DNA from: Octopus sinensis
Taxonomy: Eukaryota
Direction of reading: 5' to 3'
Assembly: GCF_006345805.1 (NCBI RefSeq)
Contig: NW_021824970.1
Coordinates: 1-17,139 of the forward strand
Length of the DNA stretch: 17,139 nucleotides
Position numbers and translations under genes: made by a program. Positions 4,192 to 12,558 of the stretch are shown here, one piece after another; within the stretch, counting starts at the first letter, position 1, and every line of letters begins with the position of its first letter. The notes under the pieces were generated by a model that was not told where the DNA came from, did no database searches, and saw only the letters and a list, made by a program, of their open reading frames with translations.

Positions 4192-4273
4192 ACTGTCAAC
4201 AGCCCACAGCAATATTACTCGGAAAAATTGCATCATTTAGGAGAAATACCAAATAACTACAATCCACAAAACG
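4192..4273 (+). CDS. MyoD: Internal coding exon (82 nt, phase 0 to phase 1) of MyoD-family gene: TVNSPQQYYSEKLHHLGEIPNNYNPQN(G)
   Basis: Strong acceptor TTCTGCCCCTTTTTTTATATTTTTTCAG| and donor AACG|GTACGA. Only one of three frames is open, and it joins in frame to the helix III exon at 7886. Size and phases match the middle exon of vertebrate MRF genes. Orthology rests on the downstream exon. Confidence 0.7.
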
Positions 4274-4360
4274 GTACGATTCTTTTTGTGTGTTTTGACT
4301 AATCAAATGTGTACATTTATATATAAGCGTGGCTGTGTGTCAAAATATGAAATCAATATA

Positions 4361-5288
4361 AGGTGGCAGAATCGTTAGCACGCCGGACAAAGTGCTTAAC
4401 GGTATTTCGTCCGTCGATAAAGTACCAGTTACGCACTGGGGTCGATATAATGACTTAATCCGTTTGTCTGTCCTTGTTTGTCCCTTCTGTGTTTAGCCCC
4501 TTGTGGGTAGTAAAGAAATAGGTATTTCGTCCGTCGCTACGTTCTGAGTTCAAATTCCACCGAGGTCGATTTTGCCTTTCATCCTTTCGAGGTCGATAAA
4601 TTAAGTACCAGTTGCGTACTGGGTCGATCTAATCGACTAGCTCCCCCCACGTCTCCAAAGATTTCAGGCCTTGTGCCTAAAGTAGAAAAGAATCGTAGCA
4701 CGCCGGAAGAAACGTTTAGCGACATTTCGTCCGTTTTCACGTTCTGCCATCAAATTCCACCGAGATCGATTTTGCATTCCACCCTGTCGATACAATAAGT
4801 ACCAGTTAATGACAGGGGTCGATGTAATTACCTTCCTCAGCCTTTTGGCCTTTTTCCAAAGAAAGGAAAGAATTATGAGGCAGGCGGCGGGCGGCTTGGC
4901 ATATTCGCTACCGTGCTGGAAAAATACTTAATGGCATTCCTCCAAGCTCTACGTTCAGAGTTCAAAACCTGCCATGGTTGAGTTTGCTTTTCATCCTTTC
5001 CGGATCGATAAAATAAGTACCAGTTGAGTACTGGAGATCGATGTGATCGACTTACTCCCTTCACCGAAACTGCTGGCCTTGTGCCAAAATTTGAAATCAA
5101 TATTGGAAGGCGGCGAGTCGGCCGAATCGTTAGCATGCCGGATAAATGCTTATCGGCATTCTGTCCGTATTTACGTTCTGAGATCAAATTCCGCCGAGGT
5201 CGGCTTTGCATTTTATCCTTTCGGGGTCGATCAGAATAAGTGCCAGTTACACATTGGGGTCGATGTAATCGACTTCATCCGTTTGTCT
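4361..5288 (+). mobile_element. Head-to-tail array of five family-A SINE monomers
   Basis: Monomer starts near 4361, 4521, 4690, 4883 and 5109. Each has the TTCG/CC..ACGTTC..AG.TCAAA, GTCGATAA..AAGTACCAG and GGGGTCGAT blocks, with differing divergence. Confidence 0.9.
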
Positions 5289-5400
5289 CTGCCTGTCTGT
5301 CTGTCTGTCTGTCTCTGTCTGTCTGTCTGTCTGTTTGTCTGTCTGTCTGTCTGTCTGTCTGTCTCTCTCTCTCTATATATATATATATATATACATATGT
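5286..5400. repeat. (GTCT)n-(CT)n-(TA)n compound microsatellite continuing from the SINE linker
   Basis: Directly visible. Confidence 0.95.
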
Positions 5401-5928
5401 ATACATACGCTATTAGGTATACGTTGATGTGTTACGCCCACTCCCCACTTGCACACATGCAGGCGCTCGCCAACACATGCACACACACCACACACACGCA
5501 GTGACAGAAAAGAACAGCCACAAAGATACGTACATATAATCACACGCACGCACGCACACTATACGTATTCAAGCACGATTTTCCACACAAATAACACATA
5601 AATAACACATACAAACAAAAGCATTGCTTCACACTTTTAGAGTGAGGTATGGAAGGGAGAGAGAGAGAGAGAGAGTGAGAGACAGACAGACAGACAGAGA
5701 GATAGAAAGAAAGCGAGAAAGAGAGCAGAGAGTGTAGGAGGAGGAGGGAGAGTATTGGTTTCTTTGGCGATGTTCTTCGGAAACTCGACAAAAAGACAAC
5801 ACAACAATACGCGATGTGTCAGGATTTGTTTGTGAAGGTAGATTATTTGGAATGGTTTCACAGCAGGGTCATTTGGTTAACTGGTTATCTGGCATTCGTC
5901 TCAAGGCGAGAAGCTGTGATCAGCTTTC

Positions 5929-6330
5929 TATGTATGTATGTATGTATGTATGTATGTATGTATGTATGTATGTATGTATGTATGTATGTATGTATGTATG
6001 TATGTATGTATGTATGTATGTATGTATGTATGTACGTACGTACGTACGTGTGTACGTGTGTACGTATGTATGTATGTAAGTATCTATCTATCTATCTGTC
6101 TATGTGTTTATTTATTTTTATGTATGTGCGTGTGTACGTGTGTGCTAATAGATAAGTATATATATATATATATGTATGTATGTATATATACGTGTCTATA
6201 CATATAAGTGTATATACCTCATATATATATATATTTGTGTGTGTGTGTTTGTGTATCTATCTATCTATCTATCTATCTATCTATCTATCTATCTATCTAT
6301 CTATCTATATATATATATATATATACCTGT
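5929..6330. repeat. (TATG)n, (TA)n, (TG)n, (TATC)n compound microsatellite
   Basis: Directly visible. Confidence 0.95.
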
Positions 6331-6339
6331 GTGTCTATA

Positions 6340-10191: not shown

Positions 10192-10229
10192 GACACCTGA
10201 TGAAGGCTGGAAGGTATATCAGCCGAAAC
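10192..10229 (+). ncRNA. Truncated minimal type-I hammerhead ribozyme motif
   Basis: GACAC CUGAUGA A GGCUG GAAGGUAUAU CAGCC GAAAC. Core and 5-bp stem II are intact; the cleavage triplet and 3' strand of stem I are deleted. Confidence 0.6.
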
Positions 10230-10337
10230 AAGATGAGGACAAATATCCGTCAAATCTAAATAATGTAAATAATGTACATAATTCCTCATTTAGATGAATA
10301 TATAAAAATAGAACTGTAAAATCACTTTGTGCCTGAG

Positions 10338-10832
10338 AATGCTGTTCGAATTTTCTCAAAAGATTTAGGAAAAGAATTCAGGCTTGAAAAGTCCGTTATG
10401 TAACGAAGAACATTTGAAGGAAGTCATGGAATTGAAATGCCAAATGGACAAACAATGAAATCAAGCTGAGAAAGGGCAATGGTACAAGTAATTAAAAATA
10501 CGGAATCAGATGTAATAAAGCATGAAGAGATGTGATGCAAAATACAAGGAAGGATTATACATGAGAAATGAGAAAAAATATTACACCGGAAGTTGAATCT
10601 AAGAAATGTTAATTAAAGAATCAATTCAAGCAGTTAATTGATGCAAGTTATCAAAAATGGAATTGGAATTGTGGATTGGTCAAACAACGAAACACAGAAA
10701 CTTGACAGGAAAATTAGAATGCGGTTGAATATATATGGACCCCACTATCCAAAAGTTGATATTATCTAGTTGTATTTGAAGAGAGACCAAGGTGAAAGCG
10801 GCTTAATTGGCGTGGAAGAGTGTGTACAGATG
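10338..10832 (+). mobile_element. Degenerate R4/Dong-clade non-LTR retrotransposon RT C-terminal fragment
   Basis: Translation: NAVRIFSKDLGKEFRLEK..GIEMPNGQTMK..DVIKHEEM..KLN..GIGIVDWSNNETQKLDRKIRMRLNIYGPHYPKVDII*LYLKRDQGESGLIGVEECV. It follows the FS.DI.MEFGL.K, DW...EL..LDRKTR, HPK.D..RLYL.R..GGRGL motif order of this clade. Many stops. Confidence 0.8.
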
Positions 10833-11949
10833 GACCGGCTTACATGATTATTTGTAGGATATATATATCGGAATTGTATACATACATATTACTTACATAA
10901 ACATATTCAATATCATTAAATCAAATACAACTAAAATTTCTTTCACCGTTGTTGACAAACATTTCTAATTTTTTTATCTCCCAAACATGGCGTAAAACAT
11001 TTAATAGGAACAATGATAATGCTAGTTATACCTGCAGCTGTAACGTTAGAATATCTTATTAAAGATATCAGTTCATACACGGGTAGACAGCACTACGTGT
11101 TTTTATAGAAATAAACAGTCTGACACTTCACCTACTTAATCAGCAAATATCAAACTTATAATTAGATTCACAAGTTAATGCTATTTATAGTTCTAGTAAT
11201 AGGATCGGCAGCTATCACATTACATATCTTTGCATCCAGTGACTATATATATTGATCACGCAAGCAACCCTGCTCCAAGCAACGAAGTTAATAAGCAGCC
11301 ATCCAGACTCAGATATTAAGATAAAGATCTCCGTAATTGTTAATTTGAAGAGTTATGTTCCCTCGACCGTAAATGTAATGCAAAAGTTTTAATTTACCAA
11401 ATCGAATCCACTCTTCTCTTCGGGGCCTACTATATATAGCAAATTACACATTGTTATGTATGAAGGATCTTTCAAGACTGATTATATAAATCAATTTCAA
11501 ATTCGCCACAGCTTTATCTAACAACTTTTGGCAATTAAAGAAGTGTCTAGCAAATTTTAAAATATCTTGATGGATATTAGTATTTTTGTAATAAATAGAT
11601 TAACGCGAAGAACTATTTGTAACAACTATAACGAGAGACATCAAAGAAATTAAATAGAAAAACTAAAGAAATGAATTAAACGAGCTAATTAGGCCACTCG
11701 CACTACTTTGAGTTACCGGATGTAGATCGCCATTACGCCCGAAGCTTAACAAGGGCAATCCCAGGTGCAGCCAGCCAGAACCCCCGTAATACGATGCCTC
11801 ATTAGTACTGCATCATCTTTTCTATCGGCCACCGCCATCTGATGATTGTCTTCAGGAATGAAAGTTTCAGTAATTACGAAGATGTGACAGATTATGAACT
11901 ATAGCAAAAGTGAACTTTCTCTTAGTACACCATCGTGACTACGCATACG

Positions 11950-12406
11950 TGTATGTATGTATGTATGTATGTATGTATGTATGTATGTATGTATGTATGT
12001 ATGTATGTACGTATGTACGTATGTATGTATGTATGTATGTATGTATGTATGTATGTATGTATGTATGCATGAACGTATGTATGTATGTATGTATGTATGC
12101 ATGCATGCATGTAGTTGTATGTATGCATGCATGCATATATCATGTAGTATGTATGTATGTATGTATGTATGTATGTATGTATGGCATGCATGTTGTATGT
12201 ATGTATGTATGTATGCATGCATGTATGTATGTATGTATGTATGTATGTATGTATGTATGTATGTATGTATGGTATGTAGTATGTATGTATGTATGCATGC
12301 ATGTATGATGCTGCATGCATGCATGTATGTATGTATGTATGTATGTTGTATGTATGCATTATGTATGTATGTATGTATGTATGTATGCATGTATGTATGT
12401 ATGTAT
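11950..12406. repeat. (TATG)n microsatellite with CATG variants, about 450 bp
   Basis: Directly visible. Confidence 0.95.
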
Positions 12407-12514
12407 GGTTGGTTGGCTTTATCGATGGACTCCAAGAAGGAACACATTATTACAATATGATTACTAAGGGAAATCTATGTACTTCTAACGCCTTTCTTAG
12501 TTTTTTTATCCCAG

Positions 12515-12558
12515 CTACCGACGAGTACAGATTTGACCGTTCCGATTTTCTCTTATGA
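12515..12558 (+). CDS. MyoD: Probable terminal coding exon of MyoD-family gene: (A)TDEYRFDRSDFLL*
   Basis: Branch-point-like TTCTAAC at 12483-12489, pyrimidine tract, CCCAG| acceptor. Phase-1 entry is compatible with the 7886-7960 exon; TGA at 12556-12558. No homology evidence for this peptide, and a competing AG lies at 12499-12500. Confidence 0.6.

Follow-up and report, generated by a model that had tools for sequence, protein, structure and literature searches.

A stretch of 17,139 nucleotides (nt) of Octopus sinensis DNA (contig NW_021824970.1, positions 1 to 17,139, forward strand; hereafter the window, at its full length) carries, judging from its sequence, the 3′ part of a gene for a myogenic regulatory factor (MRF) of the MyoD family, an ordinary orthologue in a well-known family. 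The best model for this part, which we consider probably correct, joins an exon at 4192-4273 to a terminal exon at 7886-8022 and gives 219 coding nt and 72 amino acids within the window. The gene would be of the single-copy type, with the canonical layout of three coding exons, and the window would carry the last two of them. The initial annotation had spread the same 3′ part over three micro-exons, the second of them ending at 7960 and the third lying at 12515-12558.

Splicing by script reproduced all the sequence facts of that annotation, including its coordinates, lengths, introns, GT-AG sites and open frame. The three pieces measure 82 nt (4192-4273), 75 nt (7886-7960) and 44 nt (12515-12558), are separated by GT-AG introns of 3612 and 4554 nt, and join into an open frame of 201 nt that ends in TGA and encodes TVNSPQQYYSEKLHHLGEIPNNYNPQNGYEQLSSGVSSLDCLSLIVESISPTATDEYRFDRSDFLL. 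Each piece is preceded by a pyrimidine tract and AG (ttttttcag, ccctacag and tatcccag, respectively), and the donors of the first two pieces read ACG/GTACGA (at 4274) and CAG/GTACGA (at 7961).

Homology of the first two exons to MRFs

We searched 1.84 billion representative proteins exhaustively with HMMER, using as query the 52-residue product of the first two exons and leaving off the tail to keep the question of the 3′ end unbiased. The search returned 12 matches at E ≤ 1e-3, all of which were MRFs or C-terminal fragments of MRFs. The best match, P0230 (62.4 bits, E 1.4e-12, 74% identity to the 52-residue product), is encoded by a transcript contig of 1590 nt from run SRR6926326; this protein of 368 residues carries the Pfam domains Basic, HLH and Myf5. 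Other matches came from Terebratalia transversa (its MyoD, which carries Basic and HLH), Owenia fusiformis, Nucella lapillus, Candidula unifasciata, Centruroides and Priapulus, together with Plakobranchus/Elysia and Lamellibrachia fragments. The nearest named relatives in this search were gastropods, a brachiopod and an annelid, and the gene appears to belong to the lophotrochozoan-type MRFs, probably molluscan ones. The initial annotation had taken it to be the cephalopod MRF; long introns rich in A+T and crowded with microsatellites and SINE-like copies would be in keeping with a cephalopod.

The peptide also passed the Pfam Myf5 profile (PF12232) with 24.3 bits, above the gathering score of 23 (E 5.4e-5), residues 24-49 aligning to positions 46-71 of the 71-position profile; the 66-residue peptide of the three-piece model and the peptide of our revised model, read straight through, gave the same result. 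With this score and with MRFs making up all 12 HMMER matches, the earlier assignment of the region to the 3′ part of a MyoD/Myf5/nautilus-type MRF holds.

We then built a profile from the post-bHLH (basic helix-loop-helix) regions of ten MRF proteins and compared it with all 917 stop-free segments from the six frames of the window. Only two segments matched, both on the + strand, and no further MRF-like segment was found among the 917. The segment containing 4192-4273 scored 28.5 bits (E 7.5e-8, profile positions 27-54), and the segment from 7886 onward scored 47.1 bits (E 1.2e-13, profile positions 53-91), its alignment extending to about 7995; the next best segment had an E value of 1.5. The two matches abut and are collinear in the profile; the first two exons are thus genuine, and their products adjoin each other in the protein.

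A word-indexed protein search with the 66-residue peptide gave no match among proteins of up to about 1.75 times the query length, a range in which full-length MRFs were unable to appear; because of this length limit, the result is not evidence against homology. Local phmmer comparison of the same peptide with the retrieved MRFs gave 47.7 bits (E 3.6e-7 at Z = 5.8e9). Chimeric queries made of an MRF bHLH and the window peptide matched many MRFs, none of them with this C-terminus among the proteins within the same length range.

Exon structure in related genes

We mapped the MRF genes of Candidula (L007), Owenia (L010), Priapulus (L011) and Centruroides (L012), each of which has three coding exons. 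In all four, exon 1 ends in ...DY[MT] and is followed directly by intron 1, and exon 3 runs from a split Gly codon through helix III to the stop without a further intron. Exon 2 of the relatives is about 79-82 nt long, starts with [GAT][IMVA][HN]SP and ends on the first base of the Gly codon. The first junction reads DYM/TVNSPRYYMEKLQHYGE in Priapulus and DYM/TVNSPNYYTEKLHHYGD in Terebratalia MyoD, and in many relatives the genomic exon-1 open reading frame (ORF) closes with DYM and then VS, which is how a donor of the GTnAGT type translates.

The penultimate coding exon of the window (MRF exon 2; 4192-4273, + strand) follows this pattern. It is 82 nt long, has the acceptor ttttttcag/ACT, and begins in phase 0 and closes in phase 1; it encodes TVNSPQQYYSEKLHHLGEIPNNYNPQN and contributes the first base of a Gly codon. 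Both of its ends coincide with the two conserved intron positions and their phases, 0 and 1. In blastn, this exon aligned to a spliced MRF transcript from a relative (L009) with an E value of 5e-4. Intron 2 (4274-7885, + strand) is 3612 nt long and of phase 1, with GT at 4274 and AG at 7884-7885, and contains microsatellites and copies of an element resembling a short interspersed nuclear element (SINE). The terminal coding exon (7886-8022, + strand) has a coding part of 137 nt, including the TGA at 8020-8022, and encodes (G)YEQLSSGVSSLDCLSLIVESISPTGTTSMLNSINAAGQTTHPPC; it would run without interruption from 7886 through the helix III motif SSLDCLSLIVESIS, encoded at 7912-7953, to that TGA.

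Two of the comparison loci had features of their own. P0133 is a complete MRF of 264 residues that has helix III as well as an ERPL tail; one continuous ORF encodes it (ENA contig ctg317696, gene 3001-3795, locus L008), and the locus is an intronless MRF gene or a retrocopy. In Centruroides, L012 contains the short middle exon twice (14355-14438 and 17962-18045), at a distance of 3.6 kb. The two copies give matching tblastn alignments and are bordered on both sides by the same 12 nt; they reflect either a local duplication or an artefact of the assembly.

The 3′ end of the coding sequence

Reading straight through the proposed donor at 7960/7961 gives SISPTGTTSMLNSINAAGQTTHPPC and then the stop at 8020-8022, with GTTSMLNSINAAGQTTHPPC as the tail. 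The C-terminal 72 residues of the protein would then be TVNSPQQYYSEKLHHLGEIPNNYNPQNGYEQLSSGVSSLDCLSLIVESISPTGTTSMLNSINAAGQTTHPPC. The tail consensus of the relatives is SISP[TN].T..[MVI]L[NT].[LM][TS]..[DE]RPL, and its counterpart in the window is SISPTGTTSMLNSIN. At the nucleotide level, blastn aligned 7885-7979 to L009 with 76% identity (E 9e-14). This alignment begins at the acceptor (7885/7886), passes the proposed exon end by 19 nt and keeps a gapless register beyond 7960, where L009 reads ACA AGC ACG AGC GCC ATG TTG AAT and the window reads ACA GGT ACG ACG TCA ATG TTA AAC. The intronless copy P0133 encodes the same contiguous tail.

Since a profile of the tail by itself was too short for significant matches, we scored whole C-terminal candidates with the MRF C-terminal profile and compared the gain from each tail with a null set, 3000 stop-free tails taken from the six frames of the window itself. 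The score was 76.8 bits with no tail, 79.9 bits with the exon at 12515-12558, 82.0 bits after removal of 41 nt (7961-8001) and 88.3 bits for the read-through. The read-through tail thus gained 11.5 bits, a value reached by 0.07% of the null tails (2/3000); the 41-nt removal gained 5.2 bits (reached by 3.2%), and the exon at 12515-12558 gained 3.1 bits (reached by 13.4%).

In the three-piece model, the helix III exon would end at 7960 and be spliced, constitutively or in one isoform, over the 4554-nt intron to 12515-12558, giving the tail ATDEYRFDRSDFLL. The donor-like site in question (CAG/GTACGA, 7961-7966, + strand), which lies within the terminal exon of our model, shares its hexamer with the validated donor at 4274, a pyrimidine tract of 12/15 precedes the acceptor at 12514, and Ciona and Takifugu are known to make MRF isoforms with alternative C-termini (PMC9528969). 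The 44-nt piece, however, has no homology: it did not match the MRF C-terminal profile and has no counterpart in transcript L009, whereas homology runs on past 7960 in both nucleotide and protein comparisons. No intron lies at the position of 7960/7961 in the four other protostome MRF genes or in the intronless copy. Downstream of 7961 we counted 14 acceptor-like sites (YAG with at least 11/15 pyrimidines), and entry in phase 1 gave a short open tail at every one of them (median 15 residues); because all 14 yield comparable tails, a 14-residue open frame ending in TGA is uninformative. Sites of the form nnG/GTAnG occur 10 times on the + strand of the window (0.58 per kb). An AATAAA lies at 12605, 47 nt past the stop of the proposed third exon, but the same hexamer also follows the read-through stop, at 8106 and 8114, and against a background of 1.75 hexamers per kb this signal does not discriminate between the two stops. 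We therefore abandoned the model of three micro-exons, which we regard as unlikely. Its third exon is most likely an artefact in which a donor-like GT inside the terminal exon was joined to one of many acceptors, 12515-12558 is most likely intergenic or 3′-flanking sequence, and the donor-like site at 7961 is probably not used, or used in a minor isoform only.

Downstream of the helix III codons lies a second tail-like stretch, DDTSAMLNNISFRSLLKLHI followed by a stop (8002-8063, + strand), which is in frame +2 relative to helix III and presumably belongs to the 3′ untranslated region. Its residues TSAMLN recur unchanged in the tail of P0230, and in blastn the 14 nt at 8012-8025 are identical to positions 1393-1406 of L009. 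Deleting exactly 7961-8001 (41 nt, beginning with GT and ending with AG) would bring this stretch in frame with helix III. The true tail might accordingly be this more ancestral-looking second copy, ...SISPT(…)DDTSAMLNNISFRSLLKLHI with the stop at 8061-8063, reached through a micro-intron at 7961-8001 or hidden by an assembly indel between 7986 and 8001. Besides the shared TSAMLN, the exact match to L009 and the restored frame, the gain of 5.2 bits (better than most random tails) and an alignment of "SF--RSL" with "SVTERPL" speak for this explanation. On the other side, 41 nt is below the typical size of a metazoan intron and no pyrimidine tract precedes the AG; the first copy is already in gapless register with the transcript and scores higher with the profile; and a frame-restoring GT...AG pair is not unlikely by chance, as one of the three available GT sites was bound to fit. 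We consider this explanation quite unlikely. A tandem duplication of 7955-8001 as 8002-8066 was also considered and rejected, as the nucleotide similarity of the two copies was no better than that of shuffled sequences. The second stretch could have arisen by an old duplication, by a small assembly indel or as part of a micro-intron arrangement.

A related idea is that the terminal region gives rise to alternative C-termini after helix III, either the read-through ending in NAAGQTTHPPC or a form spliced from the donor at 7961. The spliced form could run from 7960 to 8002, over the 41-nt micro-intron and into the ancestral-like TSAMLNNIS.RSL tail, or from 7960 to 12515. We think it improbable that such alternatives exist; if they did, the tail after helix III would be a regulated module, as it is in the MRF isoforms of Ciona and pufferfish.

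Several points weigh against the read-through model that we favor. The donor CAG/GTACGA at 7961 is as good as the real donor ACG/GTACGA at 4274. The conserved [DE]RPL end is missing from the read-through tail, which extends four residues further than the tails of relatives, and a simple read-through leaves the out-of-frame stretch at 8002-8063, with its 14-nt exact match to L009, unexplained. Family membership is judged from the C-terminal third of the protein, the bHLH exon being outside the window; the junctions and the read-through are proposed by comparison with the sequences of relatives, and the gene models used for that comparison, transcripts and cDNA aside, are computational predictions.

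The expected exon upstream of the window

Under the read-through model, exon 1 would lie upstream of position 1 and encode the N-terminus, the His/Cys-rich Basic region and the bHLH, reading ...RRCLLWACKACKRKTV.VDRRKAATMRERRRL...NAIEYIESLE...DYM, with GT following in phase 0. A hallmark of MRFs is a bHLH with the myogenic basic region RRKAATMRERRRL after a His/Cys-rich Basic domain (PF01586, PF00010). No bHLH above noise was detected anywhere in the window by tblastn with MRF bHLH query segments. Positions 1-4191 (+ strand), which would be the 3′ part of intron 1, are repeat-rich and without a bHLH exon in either the tblastn or the profile search. The initial annotation had placed the His/Cys and bHLH exon upstream of position 1, and the results agree with this: no such exon is in the window, and the 82-nt exon opens in phase 0 at the site where relatives have their conserved intron after ...DYM.

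The lack of a bHLH exon in the window could also be taken to mean that the window carries a decaying remnant of an MRF gene, either a pseudogene or an orphaned 3′ part, whose two exons are no longer expressed in a functional factor. The extreme C-terminus without the conserved [DE]RPL end would fit such a remnant, as would the protein searches, which gave no annotated protein or transcript with this peptide (those with word-indexed and chimeric queries covering proteins within the length range given above). However, the homologous frame is open in both exons, their AG and GT boundaries are intact, the helix III motif is nearly identical to the consensus of relatives, and lophotrochozoan genomes normally hold a single MyoD gene (PMC5381572). 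The MRF introns of relatives are 3-36 kb long, and because introns of several to tens of kb are normal there, an exon 1 outside the 4.2 kb upstream of the 82-nt exon is unremarkable and carries no weight. A remnant is very unlikely.

Comparison with known MRFs and proposed function

For comparison within the Lophotrochozoa we used Terebratalia transversa MyoD (AJV21316.1, a cloned cDNA), Candidula unifasciata CAG5117077.1, Owenia fusiformis CAH1799641.1, Nucella lapillus KAL8609935.1 and P0230. The window peptide shares with these proteins a collinear C-terminal region, DYM / [TA]VNSP.YY.EKLHH.G...N / G[YF][ED]Q...SSLDCLSLIVESISP plus T.T..ML (slashes at junctions), with 60-74% identity over 52 residues. 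It also shares both intron positions and phases and the location of helix III in the last exon. The differences concern the last ~10 residues, which are ..V.[DE]RPL before the stop in the relatives and NAAGQTTHPPC in the window read-through, the extra out-of-frame tail-like stretch downstream, and the extent of the sequence, as the window covers none of the N-terminal two thirds of the protein.

Vertebrate MYOD1 and MYF5 likewise have three exons, with a short middle exon that is not a multiple of three, so that its skipping shifts the frame, and with a helix III of the SSLDCLSSIVERIS type in the third exon (PMC9528969). In human MYOD1, exon 3 is thrown out of frame and helix III is disrupted when exon 2 is skipped (PMC9528969). 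The Myf5 domain scored above threshold in the window peptide, and 12 of the 14 helix III residues are equal to those of MYOD1. By contrast, vertebrates have four MRF paralogues where lophotrochozoans usually have one (PMC5381572), the window sequence outside helix III cannot be aligned with vertebrate MRFs, and vertebrate C-terminal tails are longer. A precedent exists in Ciona MRF and Takifugu myoD, where alternative splicing or 3′ processing yields isoforms that diverge at helix III or beyond it (PMC9528969). The donor-like site at 7961 could in principle act in the same way; one isoform in Ciona and Takifugu loses helix III, whereas every candidate here, as read from the genomic sequence, keeps it.

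The bHLH of an MRF binds E-boxes as a heterodimer with an E protein. We infer transcription, a function and a poly(A) site, the last of which would fall just beyond 8106-8119 under the read-through model, for the window gene, whose encoded protein would, going by its family, be the animal's myogenic bHLH factor. In mouse MyoD, helix III works jointly with the His/Cys region; it is required for activating silent muscle genes and mediates Pbx-dependent targeting of the myogenin promoter (Bergstrom & Tapscott 2001 and Berkes et al. 2004, summarized in PMC9528969); by analogy, the same two regions would let the factor encoded here switch on silent muscle genes. Lophotrochozoan genomes generally hold one MyoD-family gene (PMC5381572), and the Terebratalia MyoD orthologue is expressed in muscle-forming mesoderm (PMC4404124).

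The initial annotation had described the MRF gene as poorly characterized in molluscs, a fair description in light of a 2017 review, according to which work on cephalopod MRFs had relied solely on vertebrate antibodies and expression data for octopus were lacking (PMC5430041). The helix III part of what is presumably the only MyoD-family gene in this little-studied lineage now has fixed coordinates and a fixed reading frame, and a correct 3′ gene model is useful for annotation, in situ probes, single-cell marker lists and CRISPR targeting. No new kind of gene or mechanism is revealed. The structure adds one more data point for a three-exon MRF gene and a tail motif after helix III that are older than the protostome-deuterostome split.

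Metagenome loci and repeats

Two proteins, P0047 and P0088, were considered as truncated models of the sought gene, traced to a compact-genome eukaryote in metagenomes and dropped. In the metagenome contigs that carry them (loci L001-L006), the MRF exon-1 ORF lies within a few kb of genes for a nanos-type zinc finger, cytochrome b561, a cadherin and a leucine-rich repeat protein, and this packing indicates an animal with a very compact genome that is unrelated to the window.

Microsatellites and an interspersed SINE-like repeat dominate the window, whose G+C content is 34.8%. Rfam and tRNA scans of the window gave no match, and three intronic ORFs were without a match in Pfam. One SINE-like element is present in at least six copies (~3294-3570, 4399-4835, 4936-5276, 9172-9504, 9609-9785 and 16539-16881), which are sited in both introns and downstream of the gene and are 60-92% identical to each other; ARAGORN and Rfam recognized no tRNA-like head in them. 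Very dense arrays of (TA)n, (TATG/CATA)n, (ATT)n, (CTT)n and (GTCT)n microsatellites occupy 1770-2130, 2350-2830, 5276-6360, 7100-7770, 8300-8690, 11900-12400, 13280-14130, 15290-15770 and 16190-16430. These arrays generate most of the long spurious ORFs in the six frames, including an 89-residue ORF at 12289-12558 that contains the proposed third exon.

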